Shown here piece by piece: positions 3,067 to 29,072 of a DNA stretch of 64,000 nt. The notes beneath the pieces were generated by a model. The model was not told where the DNA came from, did no database searches, and saw nothing but the letters and a program-made list of their open reading frames with translations. Origin of the DNA: Setoptus koraiensis (Eukaryota > Animalia > Arthropoda); the NCBI GenBank assembly GCA_048013815.1, contig CM106586.1:15562001-15626000 (forward strand), read 5' to 3'. Each line of letters starts with the position of its first letter. The first letter of the stretch is position 1. Made by a program: the position numbers and the translations under genes.

Positions 3067-6000
3067 AGTCCGGGCGACGACTCACCCACCGGACACTGCT
3101 GGCGTGCACGTAGCGGCCGGCATAATGGATTGCATTTTGCGCACAAGTCAAAGCAGAGGCCCCATTCTAATCCTGTCGCCGACACTGGCGATCGACGACG
3201 CGATTGCAGGCCCGATCTCAATGGCTGATTTGATTGGGTCTCGGGACTGGCGCAGAACAGTGTTTCGGCACGCCGATAAGTCCCGTGTCTTGTATCATCG
3301 ACGGTCGCTGTCATTTATTTACTTCGTTTATTTCGTTTATTTATACGTTTTACGCGATAAGCGCGAGTCCGACGGATCGCATCGAGACGCGATGCCGATG
3401 TCGCCAATCGCCGAGAGCCGTCAATGAGTTTCTGCCTCTCGTCATCCAGAGGGAATTAGAGAAATCTTTCAGAGCTATCTCTGGGCCGTGGCAGAATTTC
3501 TCTGAGAATCCGCGAGCACTTTCGCAGCGCCAATGCACGTCAATTTGAGCCAGAGTGGCCAAAATGTTGCACGAGCACGCGGCGGGTGTAATATGGTCAA
3601 AAATCAACAAGTCAACCCAACTTTTCGAGCTGCTCGTTAAGCTGGATGCGACCAGTGATTTGCAGGCTGGCGTTTGGTCGCTGGCGATTGGCGAGCACAA
3701 CATTTGAAACTTGTAAACCATTCAGTTTGTGACAGTTGATGCGAGCCAACTTATCGCCCGCCAGCATGCGAGCCTGCGAGTCTGCGAGCCCCTCGAGCTT
3801 ATCCATAATGCGCGCCGTCTAATCTCGTCTAATCCAACTATGCCAACGGCGTCAGCAATTGTACAACTGCAAAGATTTATATTATAACAAGCCATACATT
3901 TATATATTTTTCGCCAATCTATAACGGCCTCTAATAATATAATATCTAGAACAGAATTAGCGACAGTGGCGGCGGGCGATTAGCGAGCATGAGAATGATC
4001 GCTCGCAGTTCGCAGTTTGAACGCGATTCGACAATCAGATCGGCTTCGATTTCGATTATTCTGTTTATTCGATTCGGTGCGCTTTCACACACACACCAGT
4101 GCCATGCTGCAAACTTGTGCCCCGTTCGCGATCGGCGCAATCGAACGAACGGGCGCAACAACGTCACGTAAGCTATTACGAAATGCGAGCGAATAAGCGC
4201 GTCTCGCTCTCGTCGAACGCGCCGAACGCGTCGAACGCTGCGAATCGTTCGAATGATCTATTTCTGTTTTGGCTGATCTGTCTCGTGGGCTGAGCCCGTG
4301 CAACGCGCGCTCGCATAATGCGTCTGCCAATTGCGCCCCTGCGCTGTCTCCATCTCACGTGTTCCACATCACTGGCGGGCCCCTGGCTGTCGATGGGCGC
4401 CGGCCGGTTGCCAACAATAACAACGACGACAACAGCGACAACAACCACGACAGCGACAAACAGAAAGGAGTAATGGGAACGGGGCTCTCGATGCTCCCAA
4501 TCATCGAATCCCAACCCGAGGGCTGGGTCAAGTGTGTCACGTGTGACAAAAAAGGGCTGCCCTCCATAATATCACATTTTTGCACAATAGCCACAGTGTG
4601 CCCAGTGTGAGCCTGTTATGCAACAGGCGCTGGTATCGCCATCGGTTTGGCTTCCTCTTTCATTCATTTTTTGCACAATTGTCATGTGCTGCTGGCCCCA
4701 ATGTCACCCAGTTCACCAATGTAGTTCGACGGATTCATGGGCACCGTTGATGATTTATTTTTTTCTATCCTGTCCATGCGAGGTGGAGAGCCGATTGCTT
4801 TGTTGCACTGAGGCCGCCATCCATCTGTTCTCCTTACCTGTTGCTCGACGATCGAGCCACATTAGATAACTGTTACGTTTACTCTTTTGCACCATTTTGG
4901 GGCCCGCCGTTCCGATGTCCGCGGCAACTGTTCGCCTGGAGTTAGTTTCCAGTTGAAACTGGCAACATTTGCCAGCCCATACTACCCACAGAACAGTTTG
5001 GACAGCAGCGACTCGATGCAGTTCTCACCACACAAGTGCTGCGTCGGGCCGCCCAAAAGCGAGCCAATTTGCACCAAAACGCAACTTGTCAGACCAACCA
5101 AAACCGAAGCGGCCAATTATTGCTGCCCGTCGACAAAGACGCAACTGTGGCTGTCACGCTATTGGCTCACATTTGCGTATATTTGCATAAATATCTATAT
5201 ATATATACATATTTCACCTTGGGCCATCAATTTGTTTGTGCTCGGCGGCGCTTCTTTTCGTTTCTCTGGCACTGTGGCCTTCTTTCGGGCACTGTCGCCT
5301 TGTCTCTGACACTGCTGTGCCCTCGAGGAACCGCCGGCAACACGGGAGCCCGGCATACCTGTTGAGCCCGCGCACACCGCGTCACAGTAAGCGACTCGAA
5401 ATGCATTTATACCGATACGCACGCCGGAGGGGACCGCTTTTTGGTGGACTGGTCGACGGTGGCCGAGCCAATCGATCATGCGCTGCACATGGCCGCTTGC
5501 AAGTTGCAAGTTTAAATATTTGATTACGACACGATGCGACAATGCAACGGCCTGGAGGAATAATTTGCACTGTTGTAATTTGCAAAGAAAAAAATTGTCC
5601 CAAAAAGTCTTGCGCGGCGCCGGCCCCATGCAAAATTCGTGTAAAATGCAATTTAAGCAACTGTTGCGCGCCATTAATTTCTCAATGCGTTTCCGTGGCT
5701 CTGGCATTGGTCTCGTTGCAATATTTGCCCAACACACATTACGCTCGCTCTAGATACATTACATTTATCCGCTCGTCTAATGGCCTCATCATTTTGTGCC
5801 CATCGGGCCATGTCACCGACGGCACCATGCAACCCAATGCAAGGCTGTGTTGTCGCGAATTGAGGACCCCATTTTAGAGCGAGAAACAGAGCGCTAGATC
5901 GAGACAAATTGAGTAAATAATTTTTGTGTGTTTGTCGCTTCTGCAGATCAGAGTATCGTCTGAAAGCAACGACATACAAACTGCAGTGCACCAAACAACC

Positions 6001-18480: not shown

Positions 18481-19215
18481 ATGTCTATTTTTACACCAAC
18501 TAACCAAATAAGGCTGACCAATGTGGCCGTTGTTCGAATGAAACGAGGAGGAAAACGATTTGAGATAGCTTGTTACAAAAATAAAGTGATATCATGGAGA
18601 AGTAAAATAGAGAAGGATATCGACGAGGTGATGCAAACTGTTAACATATTCACTAATGTGTCTAAAGGGGCTGTGGCAAAAAAAGAGGATCTCGTCAAAT
18701 GTTTTGGCCACGACAATATAAAGAAAATTTGCGAAGAAATATTAGATAAAGGCGAATTGCAAGTGAGCGAGAAAGAACGTCAGGTACAACTGGAGTCGTC
18801 CTTTAAGGATGTAGCCACAATAGTTTCAGAAAAATGTATCAATCCAGAAACTAAACGACCTTATCCTGTTTCAATCATTGAGAAGAGCATGAAATCGATA
18901 CATTTTTCCATCAATCCAAAGAGAAATAACAAACAACAGGCTCTCGATGTCATCAAGAAGCTTAAAGATGTTCTACCCATCGAAAGGTGCATGATGAAAT
19001 TGCGTATTGTAACAAGCAAGAAGAACAAGCAAAAGATACTAGATCTTGCAAGTGATGTTGAGTCACAAATGGTGGACGAATCAGGTAATCTTGAGATAAT
19101 TTTCTCGATTGATCCTGGACATTTCAGACAGCTCGATGAGCTAGTGAACAGCACTCAGAGATCGCAGTTACACGTACTATCAATTATAGAGATTCAAGAT
19201 GAGGATGTCGAGTGA
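18481..19215 (+). CDS. SBDS: Ribosome maturation protein SBDS, intronless, 244 aa
   Basis: MSIFTPTNQIRLTNVAVVRMKRGGKRFEIACYKNKV..W; KCINPETKRPYP. Confidence 0.97.
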   Translation: MSIFTPTNQIRLTNVAVVRMKRGGKRFEIACYKNKVISWRSKIEKDIDEVMQTVNIFTNVSKGAVAKKEDLVKCFGHDNIKKICEEILDKGELQVSEKERQVQLESSFKDVATIVSEKCINPETKRPYPVSIIEKSMKSIHFSINPKRNNKQQALDVIKKLKDVLPIERCMMKLRIVTSKKNKQKILDLASDVESQMVDESGNLEIIFSIDPGHFRQLDELVNSTQRSQLHVLSIIEIQDEDVE

Positions 19216-19515
19216 AAGGACATACGTTGACATTATTCGCCTAAGCAATTTATTTTTTATAATTATTCTAATAAACACACAGAACAGGATTACAATTGAT
19301 TAAGACTCTTTAAGGGCACCGCTCACTTCTTCTTCATGAACCAGAAGGGTTTCTCTTTCCATTCGTTCTTTTCGTAGTCCCACTTGGATGCAAGTCCCTC
19401 AATTGGATCAACAGCGTTATCTATATAGAATCTAACAACCTTCTTCTTACCCTCGTCTGACAGAGTCTCAGGCAGTGGTGGTAGTATGGTCCTTCTAAAA
19501 ACAAGGTACAAAAAT
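19177..19515 (+). repeat. Direct repeat copy 1 of the SBDS-3'-end / COX4-3'-end block (copy 2 at 24688..25026)
   Basis: Constant offset of 5511 bp; 19263..19491 identical to 24774..25002; flanks diverged without indels. Confidence 0.95.
19323..19515 (-). pseudogene. COX4: COX4 3' fragment (last about 60 codons)
   Basis: IFLYLVFRRTILPPLPETLSDEGKKKVVRFYIDNAVDPIEGLASKWDYEKNEWKEKPFWFMKKK; no upstream COX4 sequence and no ATG. Confidence 0.85.
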
Positions 19516-19850
19516 ATGCAATTGTCTAGATCGCATACAACTCCGGACAGTCACATAATAGTTACGTCTATATTAGTGAATGGGAACAGATATTATTAGA
19601 GATTCATACTTGTGTTCAAATTGAATAGGGTGGATCATTACTAGATCAATGATATCTGTATCGAATGAACATAAAAGTGAAGAGGCGTGTGTATTCATTG
19701 AACCACTTATTATAGAAGATTCAATATTTAGTTTAGCTCGACACATGTAATTAGTCACATCTAGCGCAATTGATGGAACTTTTGCCGATTACATTTCTCT
19801 GTGTCACGTTTTCTGAGCGATTTTGTATATGCAGTATCATCAAAACGAAG

Positions 19851-21985
19851 TCACGGAGCCTCCTTTGAGTTTTGATTGGCTGGACTATTGGATGAAACCC
19901 GTTTCACCGCCATGAACAATGCGAAACCCATAAAGTTGATACCACCAAGACAGCAGAACAACCAATTCCAAGAGCCCCTGAAACGTGTACCATCCTTAAT
20001 TTTTAATATATGATAGATTCCGGGAATTTAACAGATATTTATGAGTCAATTATGTAATTATTAACCCCAGTGAAAAATTAATTTTCACATGGAAATACTC
20101 ACTATCGCATCGAACACTAGTCCAACGCAACAACCAAACGCAGGTACCAGGCCGCAACCCATGGTGTTATATATACTGAAGATGGGTCCGCTGAGACCAG
20201 CCTGACTCCAGTCGTCGCTGATAGCACCCATCATGACTAGCTCTATGGCCGGATGAAGAGACTTGTTGATTGCAAATACAATGTTTTCCTCACGATTGAT
20301 GAATGTTGGCAGTATCCAGGTAATGAGAGCGCCGGTGGAGGCTAATCAGTATGTTTGAAAAACGATATATGACAACAAGGAAAACAATTTGGTCAGCATC
20401 TCGGCCATCTTTAGAAAGCTCTTTGTGGTATAACTCATAAAGTGTAAAGAGTTGAAATATCATTGTTTCATTGCTCGTTTGTTTGTTGTTGTTCTCACCT
20501 ATACAATATACCAACTTCCTGGCTTTGTGTCCTGACCATTCTAACTTAAGCGTTAGGAATCGCAGCAATTCGCTTGACCATAGTACAGCCAACAATGCAG
20601 CAGACTGTATTAGACAGCATATTAGACCGATAGATTCCATATCCATTCCCAAAATAATTCTCATATAGGTTGGCAATAAGTTACCAAAACACATTTGTGT
20701 ACCATCGTATAAAACAAAAGTCGCTATAATTAGGTAAAAGTTCCTTGAAGTAAACAACTTTTTCCATGGGATTGAGGGTGCTTGCGATCCTTCATCATTT
20801 GATGGTTTAAACGCTCTCTCCGACATAATAATTTTCAACTCTTGTTGACTAACAAGCCAGCATTCTTCAGGTGAATTTCTCACAACTATCGACCAAAGTG
20901 ACAACCAAACAGCTCCTATCAGACCAAGCCCATAGAAGGTCCACGACCAGTGATAAGAGCACAAGTAACTCGTGATCAACGGTGCGGATGTAGTGCCAAT
21001 AATGGCGAATAATTGCAGCAGCGCTATGGCCCTTGTATTCTCATAGGAGGGTAACCACTTATCAGTCATACCTAACGAAAATTGATTTGTGAGATCAATT
21101 TGAGCAAATTATCAGTTTTTCATAGTCATCACGAGTCGCTAAATTATCAATCGTGTTTTGATTCTGGTAAATCAATTAGTAGAAGGTTTCTAGCGTTGCC
21201 ATTTTTATTTTTTTATATCAATCTTACCGAAGAAAATTGGAAAACAAGCGGCCCCTCCAATACCTATGATGAATCTTAGCGCAACCACCCATTGCCAGCC
21301 GAAATACACTGCGCTTGGTATGAGAGCCATTGTAGTCAGAGAGACTATTTTTGATACAATAATTGGTTTGTAAAATCCATTTTTGCCAGCCCACTGCGAC
21401 AGATAAATTTGAGGCAACTTTGAGATGCGCAAACCAACCAAATATATTAATCAATTTTGCATGGTTACAGATAAGATGTGGTGATCAGTAAGCGTCCTTT
21501 CAGTTTTTACTTACTGCATAACCGATGAAATAAACGTTGATTATCAAACTTTGTACAAAGTTTGACCAAACAAATTCGCCATCCACACCGGGAACTAACT
21601 CCAACTCTATATTTGGATCCTCTGTATCTCTGAAAGGGTACTCTTGTTCATCGAGAGCAGTGTGATTGACCATTTTGACAATGGCCACTGTTATTGACAG
21701 ACGCAACATGAACATGAGAGCTAGACCTGTTGAGGCCAAAAACATTACCACCCATCTGATGTGGTGGAAAATTTTGTTGGGCCATCGACGTTGAGTTATG
21801 AGGCTCGCAGATAATTCGAAAGTTTCTATTGATTTCTGTCTCTTTAGTTTGTTCAACACACTCACTTCATTTCTCTTGGTAAAACTATTTCTAAGTTCTC
21901 GACATATACTATCCGGTTTAGAGAGCGTGGTCGAGTCGTTTATTTCGTCATATAAGAAAGTGCCGTCAGTTTTATTTGAATTCAT
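19851..21985 (-). CDS. SLC17 (sialin/anion:cation symporter)-like MFS transporter, about 5 exons (boundaries approximate)
   Basis: IRWVVMFL..MLRLSITVAIVKMVN; FVWS..QSLIINVYFIGY; VALRFIIGIG; KWLPSYENTRA; IPWKKLFTS..LPTYM; last exon GSWNWLF..GINFMGFALF with TGA at 19851..19853. Confidence 0.8.
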
Positions 21986-22765
21986 TGCCAATTGGTCAAG
22001 TTTGTTCGATTGGAGGACTGTTTTTCTTTTCCTCTTTGAAACTTTCGATCTGTAAACAAACAAATAATACCCCACGAAAACAGATATTTCTTTTGGGCAC
22101 CTTCTAGCTCAAAAAAATTGTCACTGCCCGACATCAATAATAGCTCTTAACGATAATCATGACAAGATACTTCTAAAGAGTTAATCTTTTTCCATCAATA
22201 GAGCCCTGACATAACTATAGTACGAACATCAACAATTTTTTTTTATTAGCTCGGCGAAAGAGGTAGAACGAATGCTATAATAACTAGATATTAATGATGA
22301 TTACCGGTGAACAATAATAAAACAAAAATGACTGTAATTCATGGCGCGAATCAGAGAATGATCGAATAAATTCTCTCATCTCTATTTGTCGTTCTATGTA
22401 ATGACATCAAATCATTTCGTAACTATAAGCGAGTGATTTATGGCGACACTTCTTGTCATGCGTGGCAGTTTAATGGGGAGCTTAACTTTTAATCCGTTGC
22501 CAACGAACACATTGTTGTCTACCATTATTGGCATCTTGGGAAATGGGCTTACTCAAAACTATTTGTAACCGGGATACATGTACTCATTTTGTGACCACCA
22601 TTGTCAGCATGTTGTTTCTGTCTGGTGTTTCTAGAGGCCAAGCAATCTGAAGCATTCAATACACTTGTCTGAATTGACTCTAGTATGATTGTGATTTTAG
22701 CGATTTCTTGTTTACTTGTCGACTTGTTAGACACAACAGAAAGAAGATTTGATTTTAACTAACAG

Positions 22766-23057
22766 CTTCTTCCTGATGAACCAGGAGGGTTTCTCTTTCC
22801 ATTCAGTCTTTTTGTAGTTCCACTCGTAAGCAACTCCCTCAATCGGATCTACAGCGATATCTATATAGAATCTAAGAACCTTCTTTTGGGCTCGGCCCGA
22901 TAGAAGCCCGAGTATCTGGCAGCGGAGGTAGTATAGCCGATCTGAAGAGATACAAAAGGATGGGTATCGATACTAGAAATATAACATTTCCGCAATTTGT
23001 TTCCATCCTCCTTCTCTCTCTAAGTGCGTCCCATTCTGGTCTCTTGTACTTAGTCAT
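22766..23057 (-). pseudogene. COX4: Diverged COX4 pseudogene (internal deletion, frameshifts)
   Basis: KYKRPEWDALR..WK..GNVIFLVSIPILLY..ILPPLPDT, then a frameshift to KKVLRFYIDIAVDPIEGVAYEWNYKKTEWKEKPSWFIRKK. Confidence 0.88.
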
Positions 23058-23181
23058 AACTAAATTAACTGAACGCTAAATCTACCGTTTATTCATGATT
23101 GATAGTCATAAATCTAACTAACAAACACATTTGCAATCAAATATGCATACACTCACAAAATGCAGTAGCAAAAATCACCAC

Positions 23182-24312
23182 TCATCTACCAAATCCTGAC
23201 AAGTTTGTAGGTGCAAATGGATCATTGCTAGGCAGGTTCATAGAGAATGCACTGGCGGGGTTGAAAGGATCATTTTCGGGCAAAGCAAAAGCGCTAGAAT
23301 CCGAGGTGAATGGATCGTTGCCCTTGAATGGGTCATCCCCTTTGAAAGGGTCATCATTTGCAAATGGATCGTTCCCGAAAGCATCCGAATCCTCAAAGAA
23401 TGGTAAATTGGAATTTTGTGCTGATGAAGAATTATTACTCTGCGATTGGCCATCACTTTTTCTACTGCTACTACTCTTGGAACGTAAGTCGTGTAATGGT
23501 GTAGGTGGTGCTAATACTTGACTGATCAACGCACTTAACCTGATAGTATCTTTGTTATTGATTGCTTGATTTAGATCATTAATCCTGTCATCTGTTTGGG
23601 CTTTGAATTCCTCCATTTCAAGCAATTTTGTTTTGACTTCTGTTAGTTGCGATTGTGTATCAGCGAGATCTTTTGACGTAGAATCGAATTCCTCATTGCA
23701 TCTCTTTAATTCTTCTTGTAAGGTGGTCTCCTCTAATTTTAGTGTCTGCAGTCGATCTCGTTTAGTTTTCAATTCTTGATCTTTAGTCTCCACTTTAGTT
23801 CTTTCCGTATTCAATTGTTTCCTTAGTTCCTCTATTTGAGTATTCATCTCGGATAACTTAGTTACAGCGATATCTCGCTGATTATCTAATTGTTTAACCA
23901 TCTGATTATAGGCTTCAATCTCATTATGCATGGTTTTCATTTCGCTCTCTTTGAGTCGCATGCTTGCTCGCTTTTGAGCTAATTCTGCTTCCAATTGTGT
24001 TTTAGCGGCTATTATGTCCTCTGGAGTTTGACGACTGGTCATAGGTGAGGTTGTGTCTGTGGTTGTTGTTGTTACTGGATTTGTTGAGGAGGTATTGGAA
24101 ATGTTTGATCCTGCCGTGTTGTTTGTTGTGCTATTATTACTTGTATTTATTCTAGCTGAAGCCAAATGCTGAAACGGGTCATCATCTGCATTATTGGTTA
24201 TATCTCCCTTTGCGTGGGACTGTTGAACAACGTTATTTGCGTCCATTATTGTCGAAGCACTCGCATTCGTTTGGCCAGAGATATTATTACTAAAATTATC
24301 AAAGTTATCCAT
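23182..24312 (-). CDS. Eps15: Eps15-like protein: coiled coil plus DPF repeats, no EH domains or UIMs, intronless, 376 aa
   Basis: Coiled coil ELAQKRASMRLKESE..VKQLDNQRDIAVTKL resembles insect Eps15; six C-terminal DPF motifs. First ATG at 24312. Confidence 0.72.
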   Translation of the reverse strand: MDNFDNFSNNISGQTNASASTIMDANNVVQQSHAKGDITNNADDDPFQHLASARINTSNNSTTNNTAGSNISNTSSTNPVTTTTTDTTSPMTSRQTPEDIIAAKTQLEAELAQKRASMRLKESEMKTMHNEIEAYNQMVKQLDNQRDIAVTKLSEMNTQIEELRKQLNTERTKVETKDQELKTKRDRLQTLKLEETTLQEELKRCNEEFDSTSKDLADTQSQLTEVKTKLLEMEEFKAQTDDRINDLNQAINNKDTIRLSALISQVLAPPTPLHDLRSKSSSSRKSDGQSQSNNSSSAQNSNLPFFEDSDAFGNDPFANDDPFKGDDPFKGNDPFTSDSSAFALPENDPFNPASAFSMNLPSNDPFAPTNLSGFGR

Positions 24313-24475
24313 GATGATAAAATGGTACACCAGTAATGATTGAATGGGGTTTGGTTTTGTAAAGCCAATGGTTACATTAGGCTAATAACGACAACCGAAT
24401 TAAATAATTCACTATACATTGAATATAAATAGACTAGAAAACAAAATTATCATGGATGTCGTTTGTCAATCTATT

Positions 24476-24725
24476 TCTATTTTGACACACCAACTAATGT
24501 GCTTGAGTATAGGGTGCTTCAAGCAAACAGTTCTACTAGCACAGATTGTGTTACGTGTGTCGCGCCTCCAAAAGTGCAATCCAAAAGTGCTCATGCACCA
24601 ACTGTGCGTCAGGACATGCATCTTCGGCGATTGTATCGTAGGCACAGTGAACAGTACTCACCATGAATATTGATCACAAGTTCTCTGCTATCAATAATGG
24701 AGATTCTAGATGAGGGTGTCGAGTG
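24476..24725 (+). pseudogene. SBDS: Decayed SBDS remnant
   Basis: TCTATTTTGACACACCAACTAA (24476) matches SBDS 18484; AGTGAACAGTACTCA (24646) matches 19143; LSIMEILDEGVE* matches SBDS LSIIEIQDEDVE*. Confidence 0.65.
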
Positions 24726-24833
24726 AAAGAACATAGGTTGACATTACTCGCCTAAGCAATTTATTTGTTATAGTTATTCTAATAAACACACAGAACAGGA
24801 TTACAATTGATTAAGACTCTTTAAGGGCACCGC

Positions 24834-25424
24834 TCACTTCTTCTTCATGAACCAGAAGGGTTTCTCTTTCCATTCGTTCTTTTCGTAGTCCCACTTGGAT
24901 GCAAGTCCCTCAATTGGATCAACAGCGTTATCTATATAGAATCTAACAACCTTCTTCTTACCCTCGTCTGACAGAGTCTCAGGCAGTGGTGGTAGTATGG
25001 TCTTTCTAAAGACCACGTACAAGAAGATTGGTATCGATATTAGGAACATAACATTTCCAGCTATATGTTTCCATTCGGGCGTAGGTGCATCAAACTCGGC
25101 AAATGTCTGACAGAACGAGTAACGGTATAATGCTTTCTTCTCATCTATTGTAAGTAATTTCCAGTCTCCTTCCTCTTTTTTTCTAAGTGCATCCATTTCA
25201 GGTGATGGTCTTTTGTACCGGATTGGGGGGCATGGTATAGACTTCAGGTCGTAGTAGACCTCTCTACCGGAGAAGCTTGGGCCAACTACCTCACGATTGC
25301 CAATCCATTCCCTGTAATCAGGCACTGGATACCCAGTAACGGTTGTTGATGATGATCGTATACAAGCAAGACGACCAATTCGCCCGAATCCTTTTATTCC
25401 GATTTTAGCTAATGGGGTGCTCAT
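24834..25424 (-). CDS. COX4: Cytochrome c oxidase subunit 4, intronless, 196 aa, GAPDH-like N-terminus
   Basis: IGNREVVG..G..Y.D....P.P.IRYK; ALRKKEEGDWKLLTIDEKKALYRYSFCQTFAEF; EWK..TM helix; DPIEGLASKWDYEKNEWK. Confidence 0.95.
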   Translation of the reverse strand: MSTPLAKIGIKGFGRIGRLACIRSSSTTVTGYPVPDYREWIGNREVVGPSFSGREVYYDLKSIPCPPIRYKRPSPEMDALRKKEEGDWKLLTIDEKKALYRYSFCQTFAEFDAPTPEWKHIAGNVMFLISIPIFLYVVFRKTILPPLPETLSDEGKKKVVRFYIDNAVDPIEGLASKWDYEKNEWKEKPFWFMKKK

Positions 25425-26605
25425 AATTGATTGTTTGTTGTATAATAAGTATTGTTGTTGCTAATAATTAGTAATAATAGTGATAAAGGTGCTGCAATGA
25501 TCGCCTTTGGTTGTTCTATCTATTTTATGTAATAACGGAGTGTGGATAATAAGATAGAGAAGGCTAACAAGATGTGAGCATCAAGCAAAAAAATAACATT
25601 AGGTCTGACTAGGAAAATATTGCGGTGAATGTCGTTTCAAGGGCCAAAATTTCGCGCAGGGGGTGGAATCATTAAAAAAGTATGCAGCTGACGCTGATCA
25701 TACCCCCGTTCATCTGTGGATATCCATTGTGATTCACAGTATAAATAATGCATTTTTCAAGCTTTCGCGCCATGCGTACATGTGCTGCAATTGGTCTTTG
25801 AAGTGAATTGAGTAGTCGGCGTCAGCATACACAGTGCATTTTTCCGAATGAACAATGCGAATGTTCGTGAAGCACAGATCGTACATTTGCAATTATTGTA
25901 TGGAATAGACTTAACAAATCGAAGCGCAGTAAAAAACATCCAATAGAGCTAGCACGAGCAGCACACTCATATTTTTCGAGTTTCCTGTGCCATGGTTAGC
26001 ACAAAGCTTGACATTGCGACCATTCTATATGTGGTGTAGGTGATGCTCGCTCTTCGTTCGCTAGCGCACCATTGATGGATTGTTGAGGCGGCCCATAGAG
26101 CACGAGAGAGCTTCGCAGTGGGTTGGTGCACGTTGCAACTGTCCCGCGACGGGACTGTGGTCGTTAACTTTCGAATTGCTTTCTGGTGACTGGCAGCCAG
26201 TCTCGCTACGCGCGCTCTCGCGTTTGGGTGTGAGCAGCCAAAGTTGTTGTTACGATGCGGATAACAAAAAATAATTGTCCTAGTTTGTAAATAAACGTTA
26301 TGCTTTTAATTAGATTGATTTCTGTATTCGATTGATTTCATTAGTACCTCAATGACAACAAAGAAATTATAACCATCAACTATCACGCAGCAGCGAATAG
26401 CAAGAATCAATGAACTATGATCATAGAAACTGACTGGTCAGTCGCCATGATTAATAGAGGCCAACATTAACATTCCTATTTCTAGTCGATAACAGTGGTC
26501 AGTTCATTGTGGCTTACCAGTTGCAAGCAATTACTCGTACATTATTTGATCGGCATAACAAATAGACAAACAAACAAAATAGAAATGAATAAAAGGGAAG
26601 TCATC

Positions 26606-29072
26606 ATGGCCAACACCGGGCAAACTCTCACCGATAGAATTAATGCCGCCCGGTACGCTTTGGCGGGTCAAGGATTGGCAAGATGTGTTTGCAAAGCCAC
26701 CACTGAGGAGATCATCGGACCGAAGAAGAAACACATAGATTGTGAGTGAGCATGATTGTTCTTTCAGACAGTCACTTTTTATCAGATTCTCTATAACATT
26801 ATGTGTCTATTGTGATGATTATTTCTTATGAACAACTTACTTCACTGTGATATACAGATTTAATCGCTTGCACAAACGAACCGAATGTCTCCATACCGCA
26901 ACTGGCCAATCTACTTATAGAGCGTGCCAATCACACAAGCTGGGTTGTTGTTTTAAAGTCTCTTATTACTGTTCATCAATTGATGTCTAACGGAAACGAG
27001 GTGAGCTCTCGACAACAAATATCAACACACTGCTAATATTAGCTGAAGCTGTATAACAATTTTGCTAACAATTATGTCTCAAATCATAATCAATGCCAAA
27101 ATCGAATAGAAATTTACCCAATACATGGCCTCCAGCAATTACACATTCGACCTGTCGGGATTTCTTGATAGGACAATGGCACGAGGCTACAATATGTCAC
27201 AATTCGTTAGAAAATATTCTCAATACATTAATGCGAAATCTCTAGCCTATAGGACGCTCGCACTAGATCTATGCAGAATCGGAAAAGAGTAAGTTAAATC
27301 GAAAGAAGTTACCTTCAAATACTGGCACATCTGTATGATGGGACCTATGACCAGTGATTTATTCATGTATGTTTTTTCCCCGATTGAAATACAGCGTTGG
27401 ATCGCCCAACCTTCTCCGCGTGATGAATATGGAAAATCTGAGCAAAACTCTTCCTGTCTTGGAAAGTCAATTGGACGCATTGCTCAATTTCGAATGCACT
27501 ACCAAAGATCTCAATAACAACGTAATCAATTCAGCGTTCATACTGTCGTTCAGAGACTTAGTCAAATTATTTGTATCCTACAACGATTGTATAATCAATC
27601 TGTTAGGTAAGATACTTTCCATTTCATGACTATTTGTGAATTAACTTCATTATAGTGACTGATCTCTATTCTTTCCACTTATTATCTTATCCAGAGAGGT
27701 ACTTTAAATTGAGTAGGAAGAAAACAAAAGAAGCTTTCGATCTGTACAAGAATTTTCTAGAGAGAATGGACAGGATTAGAGAATTTTTAAGCATTGCTGA
27801 GGCCATAGGTGTAGACAAGGGCGAAATACCTGATTTGAAGACAGCACCTAGCTCTATATTGGATGCCTTAGAGTCACATTTGAATAATTTGCAAGCCAAG
27901 AAGTAAGTCGAAGTCAATCTTGAGGAAAATCAAAAACAGTTTTCTATAGTTTATTTAATTAATACTGATTGGCCATAATTGTCTTCCAACATCATCAGGG
28001 GAGGTAAAAAAGTTGCCTCACATTCGCCGATATCTGACCCAGAAGAGAATAAAGATTTGGACGAGGGCAAAGATCTCGAAAAGAACAGCACTGAAGCTAC
28101 TCCGACAAACGATCTCAAACCCGTTGGAAATCCGTTCTTATCAAAGCCCGTAGATGATACTACAGCATCAGATGCAAACATTGAGAAAGAAGAAGTGAAA
28201 GAAAATGAAAGACCTTTGGATCCCGGAGAAAATATATCCACTTCCAAAAATCTAGCTGTCGATCCAGGTGAGTGATGAACACTTTTTGATTCTGGAAACA
28301 ATCACAGTTACATTGTTTACAAAAGTTACAAAATAACCTGTTCGATTTCTTCTATTTATATCTTGATCTGCGACATTTCAACATAGATGCAGATAAAAAT
28401 GACAGTTCTGGTAATCAAACAGTTGAACATAATACGAATGAGGGGCATCACCCACCTCCAAGACCAACTAGCTCGCCAGCAGTATCACCGAAGAATATAG
28501 CTACATCGAATGATACGAACAAGGAATTGAAGTTGAATTCGAAGAATGAAACCAACTCTAAGCCACCATCTAGACCACCATCTAGGCCACCACCGCCCTC
28601 ATCTGCCAGCTCTAGTCGTGCTGTGAGTCCTACTGTCGCAGTGGACGTAGCAGCGGATATTGTGAATCGACAAAATCGACATGAGGACGAAAAGAATAGT
28701 AACGAAACCGCACAACAACAAACCAAGTCAGAACAGGAAGTTGTTGAAAGTGTTGATTCAAATAAGATCAACCCCGACGGATGCAAGTCACAAGTAGTTG
28801 AAAACGAAGGTCCCGGTACAAATAGTGCAAATCAATCGAGGAGAGGTTCGGCAATAAGTCATAGCGGCGGTCATGCCCCACCGGCTCGACCAGCCCCGCC
28901 AGCAGCCAGGAAACAATCAGAGGTACTTGTTAAAAAGAAACAAAACACTAACCGTAAATCGATTCGTAGATCTATAGTTGAGAGGTTCCACTTACAGTCT
29001 AAGCGTAATTGTAGTCCACCACCTCCATCGATACTAAAACCAGAACACCCTTTACCATCCGAGAGACCATAG
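26606..29072 (+). CDS. PICALM: PICALM/AP180 (lap) ANTH clathrin-assembly protein; join(26606..26741,26858..27000,27110..27288,27395..27606,27695..27902,27999..28267,28387..29072), possible extra in-frame intron 28923..28997
   Basis: GQTLTDRI..A; [17 protein letters not shown]; [18 protein letters not shown]; [20 protein letters not shown]; [27 protein letters not shown]. All junctions are GT-AG and in phase. Confidence 0.93.

Follow-up and report, generated by a model that had tools for sequence, protein, structure and literature searches.

The window analysed here is the whole stretch of 64,000 nucleotides (nt) from Setoptus koraiensis (Eukaryota; Animalia; Arthropoda) between positions 15,562,001 and 15,626,000 of contig CM106586.1 (assembly GCA_048013815.1), and the subject of this report is a COX4 gene within it whose first codons, leader and upstream DNA are homologous to those of GAPDH. 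Positions are counted from the first letter of the window. Comparisons draw on the closest sampled relative, the Logan assembly SRR33593474, in which COX4 lies on contig L012 and GAPDH on contig L013; the same assembly supplies the best database matches to both proteins, P0001 for COX4 (80% identity) and P0121 for GAPDH (96%). The parts of the gene are listed below, where CDS denotes coding sequence, ORF open reading frame, HSP high-scoring segment pair, and dN and dS nonsynonymous and synonymous substitutions per site.

24834..25424, minus strand: chimeric COX4 CDS, 196 codons plus stop without an intron, a single uninterrupted ORF starting MSTPLAKIGIKGFGRIGRLACIRSSS
25008..25067, minus strand: the single hydrophobic transmembrane stretch of COX4, residues about 120-139, read from the translation and lying within the Pfam COX4 match
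25350..25361, minus strand: fusion point and first retained COX4 codons (I-R-S-S), placed by alignment to the relative's COX4
25362..25424, minus strand: codons 1-21, assigned to GAPDH (GAPDH codons 1-19 plus A-C) by codon alignment, BLASTN and a dS of 0.22 with a dN of 0.15
25425..26017, minus strand: 5′ leader and upstream (putative promoter) region assigned to GAPDH, -1 to -592, with three HSPs to the relative's GAPDH upstream region and two blocks to the species' own

An intact COX4 with a GAPDH-like start

The 196-aa ORF is a genuine COX4 and not a GAPDH. The COX4 family (PF02936) covers residues 54-186 along profile positions 6-138 of 138 with an E value of 1.3e-43, and its score of 148.7 bits exceeds the gathering cut-off of 26. 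The sole other Pfam match is Gp_dh_N (PF00044), which aligns residues 7-21 with profile positions 2-16 of 101 (E 0.0093) and at 16.7 bits falls under its cut-off of 31.7; Pfam detected no Gp_dh_C (PF02800) in the ORF and no GAPDH body after the N-terminal motif. Like ordinary arthropod COX4 proteins, here P0001 and the closest named sequence, A0A6G1SAG6 of the eriophyid mite Aceria tosichella (P0024, 60% identity), the protein has the same domain, a single transmembrane stretch and the C-terminal SKWDYEKNEWK motif common to both, and its identity to the two (80% and 60%, respectively) applies from about residue 22 onward. The original prediction, made from the letters of the window, had described a GAPDH-like motif in frame and without an intron ahead of a normal COX4 body, and the ORF, the Pfam matches and the N-terminus, where 15 of residues 1-21 are identical to the species' own GAPDH, show that description to be accurate.

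Protein and Pfam-profile searches of the whole assembly (G000; 48.7 Mb in two contigs of about 24 Mb each) returned three COX4 signals, all of them in this window, and the chimeric gene is the only intact COX4 gene found. Its body is under strong purifying selection, with a dN of 0.034 and a dS of 0.92 over the 166 codons aligned with the closest sampled relative (dN/dS 0.036). No in-frame ATG, GTG or TTG was found upstream of the COX4 start, and the second methionine is residue 77, within the conserved domain. The 31-mers sampled across 24650-25850 were present at a proportion of 0.99-1.00 in each of three DNA runs, and no record of the exact protein was found in public assemblies.

Donor, junction and timing

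The species' own GAPDH is an intronless ORF of 338 codons starting MSAPTAKVGINGFGRIGRLVLRAC, located on the minus strand at G000:C2:15455096-15456112, which is 131 kb from the chimeric COX4 and on the same strand; the closest named GAPDH is that of the oribatid Oppia nitens (81%). Beyond the glycine motif the COX4 and GAPDH starts have M-S-x-P-x-A-K in common, and bases 1-66 of the COX4 CDS are identical to those of GAPDH at 54 of 66 positions, synonymous positions included. BLASTN aligns window 25364-25476 with the own GAPDH at 80.5% over 113 bp (E 2e-24), a match made up of 61 nt of CDS and 52 nt of 5′ leader, and the nucleotide relationship to GAPDH and its leader on which the original prediction turned is thus present. 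Further upstream, a collinear block at window 25720-25777 is 90% identical to the own GAPDH over 58 bp. An all-against-all BLASTN of four 5′ regions, those of COX4 and GAPDH in this species and in the relative, gave three blocks between the COX4 upstream region and the GAPDH upstream region of the relative:

Block 1, window 25788-26017 against L013 922-1149: 69% over 231 bp, E 4e-18
Block 2, window 25594-25784 against L013 1195-1388: 77% over 194 bp, E 5e-36
Block 3, window 25364-25485 against L013 1574-1690: 77% over 123 bp, E 3e-20

The three blocks are collinear with the relative's GAPDH upstream region (L013 922-1690) and span COX4 -592 to +61, a total of about 650 bp, which bears out the earlier suggestion that GAPDH promoter DNA might have been captured as well. 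A second GAPDH paralogue (C2:11689879) was rejected as the donor, as BLASTN found no nucleotide similarity between it and the captured region.

The relative's COX4 lies in the same neighbourhood as the chimeric gene (E, F, SBDS, PXA, NOT2 and Nop), and the chimeric gene is its orthologue at the ancestral locus. In the relative, COX4 lacks introns and begins with an ATG at the corresponding position, and COX4 and GAPDH are single uninterrupted ORFs in both species. Unlike the chimera, which is GAPDH-homologous in residues 1-21, leader and upstream DNA, the relative's COX4 has a 5′ region in which BLASTN found no similarity to either GAPDH 5′ region, and the two COX4 genes are alignable from about codon 22-30 onward only. 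Nothing at this locus corresponds to the relative's COX4 5′ region (L012 9400-10145), which elsewhere in G000 matches only a short repeat; the ancestral COX4 5′ end has been lost, not moved. Given that a GAPDH-type 5′ end is present in the GAPDH genes of both species but absent from the relative's COX4, the direction is from GAPDH to COX4, in agreement with the earlier claim that COX4 captured a GAPDH start. On these alignments the capture is lineage-specific and followed the split from the closest sampled relative.

We regard it as very nearly certain that the 5′ end of this COX4 derives from GAPDH through DNA-level capture. A chance or convergent resemblance to GxGxxG has in its favour that presequences are compositionally simple and that the Gp_dh_N match, taken alone, is weak; convergence is nevertheless excluded by nucleotide identity that extends to synonymous sites and untranslated DNA, upstream DNA among it, in combination with the relative's lack of any such homology. 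Nor do presequences grade smoothly into that of the chimera, the 5′ end of the relative's COX4 being unrelated. A GAPDH-COX4 assembly chimera, which the original prediction had itself raised, is excluded by the divergence of about 20% between the segment and the true GAPDH locus, which a misjoin would not show, and by the presence of the region's 31-mers in independent runs. Neither chance nor misassembly is a tenable explanation, on our estimate, beyond a very small residual probability.

The extent of the homology also speaks against an origin as a chimeric retrogene, in which reverse transcriptase, while copying COX4 mRNA, would have jumped to the 5′ end of a GAPDH mRNA and the resulting DNA would have been inserted here. 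In keeping with such an origin, neither gene has an intron and both are strongly expressed in most animals, and retroposition had been one of the routes originally proposed. However, GAPDH homology continues for about 590 bp upstream of the ATG, far past the conserved leader block of about 52 nt and far beyond a plausible transcript, and the gene stands at the ancestral COX4 locus. Moreover, the 3′ duplicate of COX4 described below takes in the last part of the coding sequence of SBDS, and the 3′ untranslated region (UTR) is not followed by a poly(A) tract. Retroposition is accordingly given up here as a route, its probability being close to nil.

At the join, GAPDH reads ...CGT CTT GTT TTA AGA GCT TGT GTT..., the chimeric COX4 reads ...CGT CTT GCT TGT ATA CGA TCA TCA TCA ACA ACC GTT... 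and the relative's COX4 reads ...TTG GTG AAA AGA GCA TCA TCT ACC CAA GTT.... By alignment, codons 1-19 clearly come from GAPDH. Codons 20-21 (GCT TGT, A-C) may be GAPDH codons 20-21 that have undergone substitutions, or else GAPDH codons 23-24, to which GCT TGT is identical once a 9-nt deletion is allowed. From codon 22, I-R-S-S-S-T-T-V-T-G-Y-P aligns with K-R-A-S-S-T-Q-V-G-Y-P of the relative, and 21 GAPDH-derived codons have thus taken the place of the first 20 COX4 codons, nearly in register. The segment had originally been placed at 25368-25424, which covers codons 1-19 correctly but stops short of the full GAPDH-derived coding sequence, which reaches about 25362 (codon 21). The join is in frame, inside an exon and just upstream of an R-(A/S)-S-S-T conserved in both species, and L-V-x-R-A occurs at the join in both parents; microhomology may have been involved.

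Substitution rates bear on the age of the event:

Captured 20 codons against own GAPDH: dN 0.15, dS 0.22
Captured 20 codons against the relative's GAPDH: dN 0.12, dS 0.54
Own against the relative's GAPDH, same 20 codons: dN 0.023, dS 0.31
Own against the relative's GAPDH, whole gene: dN 0.021, dS 0.525

Together with the absence of the segment from the relative's COX4, these dS values, a small sample, point to a capture that took place after the species split but was not recent.

The new N-terminus as a putative presequence

Residues 1-25 of the chimeric COX4 carry a charge of +5 and no negative residue, the first acidic residue being at position 36, and residues 1-30 include 8 Ser/Thr. The maximal helical hydrophobic moment (11-residue window) is 0.80, a value reached by 237 of 5000 shuffles, compared with 0.65 for the relative-type presequence that was replaced; the N-terminus of GAPDH itself has a charge of +4/0 and a hydrophobic moment of 0.91. 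By these measures the N-terminus of the chimera is presequence-like in its predicted physico-chemical traits, being positive, acid-free and amphipathic. The substitutions assigned to the COX4 branch within the captured segment are A3T, T5L, V8I, N11K and V20A, of which T5L adds hydrophobicity and N11K adds charge; the earlier description of an acid-free, positively charged segment with an added charge from an N to K change agrees with these values. GFGRIGRL is retained although two synonymous substitutions fall within it. At the end of the segment, the R-2-like I-R-S/S-S-T of the chimera (the slash marking the putative cut) aligns with K-R-A/S-S-T of the relative, and R23-S24/S25 fits the R-2 processing motif and is a putative processing site.

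The account that we favour, with a probability of about 0.8, is a replacement of the COX4 5′ end by a copy of the GAPDH 5′ end, followed by use of the copied DNA in transcription, translation, import and cleavage. A DNA copy of about 0.65 kb, comprising the upstream region, leader and about 21 codons of GAPDH, replaced the proximal promoter, leader and first 20 codons of COX4; the alignments show the origin of this segment, its extent, its restriction to this lineage and its transfer as DNA, and they show that the gene is intact. Transcription of COX4 would now proceed from a GAPDH-type promoter and translation would begin at a GAPDH-derived ATG, the former Rossmann beta1/Gly-loop/alphaA segment would serve as a matrix-targeting presequence, and processing near R23 would leave the mature subunit essentially unchanged. 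Taken as a separate claim, it is quite probable, from the homology and the properties of the segment, that GAPDH-derived DNA now supplies promoter, start codon and presequence.

Several observations weigh against this account. The cleavage site is read from the motif alone, and the dN/dS of the 20 captured codons is about 0.7, a value that is based on very few sites and is compatible with relaxed constraint. RNA runs were compared over window 22700-26000 (3301 letters): two possible RNA runs gave three short contigs, all inside the COX4 body at 25014-25297 and none across the junction, while two poly(A)/oligo-dT raw-read runs gave 0 reads of this animal and hence provide no test. The RNA contigs, which do not cover 25300-25480, and the ratio of about 0.7 would both suit a capture of the promoter only, in which the GAPDH codons are kept out of the message or the protein by a downstream start, cryptic splicing or a non-AUG start. 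Such a gene, however, would offer no in-frame start between Met1 and Met77, the latter being inside the conserved domain, and without residues 1-21 just about 3 residues would stand ahead of the putative cleavage site. That the relative's gene is intronless with an ATG at the equivalent place, and that GFGRIGRL is intact despite its two synonymous changes, also argues for translation of the captured codons, and we consider the capture of a promoter without them very unlikely.

Two further observations run counter to the favoured account, and both have to do with the relative. Its presequence (L012 10058-10126, codons 1-23) matches GAPDH at 7 of 23 positions, ungapped and in the same register from Met1, with F13, G14, L19, V20, R22 and A23 as in-register residues in common; the shuffle p is about 0.009 for the protein, a post hoc value, and the codon-shuffle p is 0.17 for the DNA (25 of 69 nt). 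In addition, a three-way noncoding alignment places the captured upstream DNA closer to the relative's GAPDH upstream region than to the species' own. The register match may have arisen by chance, may reflect microhomology that steered the join, or may be left over from an older capture. In the last case the N-terminal extension of about 20 residues would have been GAPDH-derived already in the common ancestor, would have decayed in the relative and would have been refreshed here by ectopic conversion together with upstream DNA. Besides the register match and the noncoding comparison, the absence of the extension from other eriophyoid-type COX4 proteins favours such a history. On the other side, the 69 nt of the relative have no significant similarity to GAPDH, its upstream DNA has none, conversion across a diverged template is itself unlikely and the protein-level p-value is post hoc; we therefore think an older capture unlikely. 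Branch lengths in the three-way alignment are 84 sites for the COX4 copy, 113 for the own GAPDH and 44 for the relative. Clock dating from the noncoding sites was dropped, as the site patterns are not clock-like and the own GAPDH branch is the longest, a pattern that rearrangement of the own GAPDH locus may explain.

A GAPDH-derived presequence has a precedent in plants, where the presequence of cytochrome c1 was donated by N-terminal exons of cytosolic GAPDH (GapC) (Long, de Souza, Rosenberg & Gilbert 1996, PNAS 93:7727; as related in PMC5610209 and PMC2031878). As far as those two articles relate it, the plant case resembles that of the mite in its donor, the NAD-binding N-terminal end of a cytosolic GAPDH, in its recipient, a nuclear-encoded respiratory-chain subunit, and in a DNA-level transfer whose donor-recipient direction can be inferred. 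In contrast to that account of cytochrome c1, the mite COX4 is an animal case without introns and represents a segmental 5′ replacement and not intron-mediated exon shuffling; it took only about 21 codons where the plant gene took three exons, it gained the promoter and leader too, and a presequence that was functional gave way to the new one. The mite event is also young enough for untranslated DNA to stay alignable, unlike the plant event as so described. In rice, copies of rps11 gained presequences by duplicating those of atp2 and coxVb (Kadowaki et al. 1996, EMBO J 15:6652; as related in PMC2031878), and there too, on the outline given in that article, a presequence was copied from the 5′ part of another nuclear gene. 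However, according to the same outline the rice donors were mitochondrial proteins that already had working signals, and the gene that received them had newly moved out of the organelle, whereas in the mite a cytosolic enzyme was the donor and the gene that received its start had long been nuclear. The original claim of novelty stands for animals and for COX4, as a full-text literature search found no animal or COX4 example of a GAPDH-derived presequence, but it has to be narrowed in view of the plant cytochrome c1 gene with its GAPDH exons.

In Drosophila, jingwei and Sdic are young chimeric genes whose 5′ end or promoter was newly acquired from the gene next to them. As in these genes, recruitment of another gene's 5′ region to COX4 would have brought new regulation and a new N-terminus; unlike them, new and dispensable genes beside intact parents, the mite chimera is alone in encoding its subunit, which is essential to respiration.

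How mitochondrial presequences originate and change is an old question, and there are few cases in which donor, recipient and junction can all be read. Here the donor (GAPDH, in two species), the ancestral recipient (the relative's COX4 locus), the junction and the co-captured promoter are readable at the nucleotide level. The case suggests several testable ideas: that a cytosolic Rossmann-fold N-terminus may be pre-adapted for import, which would make this a second independent recruitment of the GAPDH N-terminus after cytochrome c1; that a working presequence may be swapped wholesale without harm to a subunit of oxidative phosphorylation; and that promoter replacement could make a respiratory gene subject to the same regulation as a glycolytic one.

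Recurrence of the upstream cassette and rearrangement of the locus

Part of the captured upstream DNA recurs elsewhere in the genome.

25625..25793, minus strand: conserved cassette core, with eight matches in G000

A core of 90-135 bp, 70-80% identical, is found upstream of unrelated housekeeping genes (SerRS, TFIIH p62 and uridine kinase/SAP30), at L014 2039-2173, L015 2014-2099, L016 2073-2157 and L017 2031-2162, and the matches also include the upstream DNA of V-ATPase c (two copies). An RNA gene in the core was considered and rejected, with no Rfam family at gathering score and no tRNA; the core may be a promoter module scattered through the genome or else a mobile element of small size. 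GAPDH itself is flanked by an inverted repeat whose arms are 100% identical and at least 1.4 kb long (positions 3535-4710 and 8911-10000 of L010, which is G000:C2:15450001-15460000), and each arm holds an identical V-ATPase c (16-kDa proteolipid) gene; the genome has no others. Over the 696 bp that precede either V-ATPase c gene, identity to GAPDH upstream -60..-677 is 79.5%, and the orientation with respect to the gene is the same. In other eriophyoid-type mites (L018, L019), GAPDH lies next to V-ATPase c, head to head. An inverted GAPDH coding fragment also lies upstream of GAPDH, at L010 8378-8552, as a further partial duplication that is 83% identical to codons about 62-120 of the functional gene.

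The repeated use of the upstream module strengthens the reading of COX4 as a gene that captured a promoter, and the recurrence of one cassette in so compact a genome may point to a broader way in which gene regulation is rewired. A more speculative possibility, which we put forward tentatively, is that the GAPDH 5′ cassette (about 0.7 kb, found before GAPDH, both V-ATPase c genes and COX4) acts in this mite lineage as a reusable module for expression and targeting, having given COX4 the start of its protein as well. If so, the beta1-loop-alphaA segment of GAPDH would be intrinsically import-competent, which would explain its independent recruitment in plants (cytochrome c1) and in a mite (COX4), and the in-register FG...LV.RA pattern of the relative's presequence could be the trace of an earlier round.

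Around COX4 the window holds the following further features, with psi1 and psi2 denoting COX4 fragments and MFS_1 a Pfam family.

26087..27499, no strand assigned: ancestral upstream flank (E side), 73.5% over 1478 bp to L012 6071-7460, abutting the GAPDH-derived segment
24672..24833, minus strand: 3′ UTR and tail of the intact COX4, including the last SBDS codons as an antisense copy
22766..24450, minus strand: block inverted with respect to the relative's order, made up of part of the old F/COX4 intergenic region, F and psi1
23182..24330, minus strand: coiled-coil gene F, 382 aa, with weak, sub-threshold Pfam coiled-coil matches only
22766-23039, within the inverted block: psi1, an old COX4 3′ fragment, degraded, 78% identical and containing a stop
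19518..22765, minus strand: 3.2-kb piece of an MFS-transporter paralogue, 75% to C2:23312112, with Pfam MFS_1, broken into several ORFs and inserted between the two COX4 3′ fragments
19177..19517, minus strand: psi2, COX4 codons 133-196 and 3′ UTR, at the ancestral position, tail-to-tail with SBDS and contiguous with it as in the relative
18481..19212, plus strand: SBDS gene, the ancestral downstream neighbour, 97% to the relative's SBDS by tblastn

The order in the relative is E, psiCOX4 (minus), F (minus), intergenic region, COX4 (plus), SBDS (minus) and PXA, and continues beyond, whereas this locus runs, down the window, from the E flank through the GAPDH-derived 5′ segment, COX4, its tail, the inverted F/psi1 block, the MFS piece and psi2 to SBDS. 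The inverted block aligns plus/plus with L012 8001-9445 and both of its flanks plus/minus (BLASTN), and the homology of the COX4 tail to L012 reaches 10811, beyond the SBDS stop. Gene F is now directly downstream of COX4 on the same strand. The F-adjacent part of the old divergent F/COX4 intergenic region stayed with F, and the COX4-proximal part is gone. BLASTN found no counterpart of the MFS piece in the relative's locus.

The two COX4 fragments had originally been taken for local copies that decayed while the chimera arose, which does not hold: both are 3′ fragments, one older than the split and the other a young 341-bp by-product of rearrangement. Because psi1 and the relative's psiCOX4 both follow the 3′ end of F, the two are orthologous and predate the split. 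For psi2, window 24688-25028 and 19177-19517 are 95.6% identical over 341 bp, and the duplicated COX4/SBDS tail unit was confirmed as 341-365 bp. At 4.4% divergence from the intact COX4, psi2 is either younger than the capture or homogenised.

A local event younger than the capture would have moved and inverted the F/psi-COX4 block and the MFS piece into the COX4/SBDS tail, duplicating the 341-365 bp that gave psi2. Neither a single inversion nor non-allelic homologous recombination between the two inverted COX4 copies reproduces the observed orientations, and both were rejected; two or more steps, or template switching, are required. Also rejected was a 131-kb inversion that would have joined COX4 to a duplicate of GAPDH, since DNA of the COX4 locus lies on either side of the chimera.

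In the relative, the F/COX4 intergenic region contains at L012 9560-9900 a palindromic repeat of the GCACAAAAGC...GCTTTTGTGC type, probably an element resembling miniature inverted-repeat transposable elements, and copies of this repeat are present in the genome studied here at C2:7938723 and C1:13668270.

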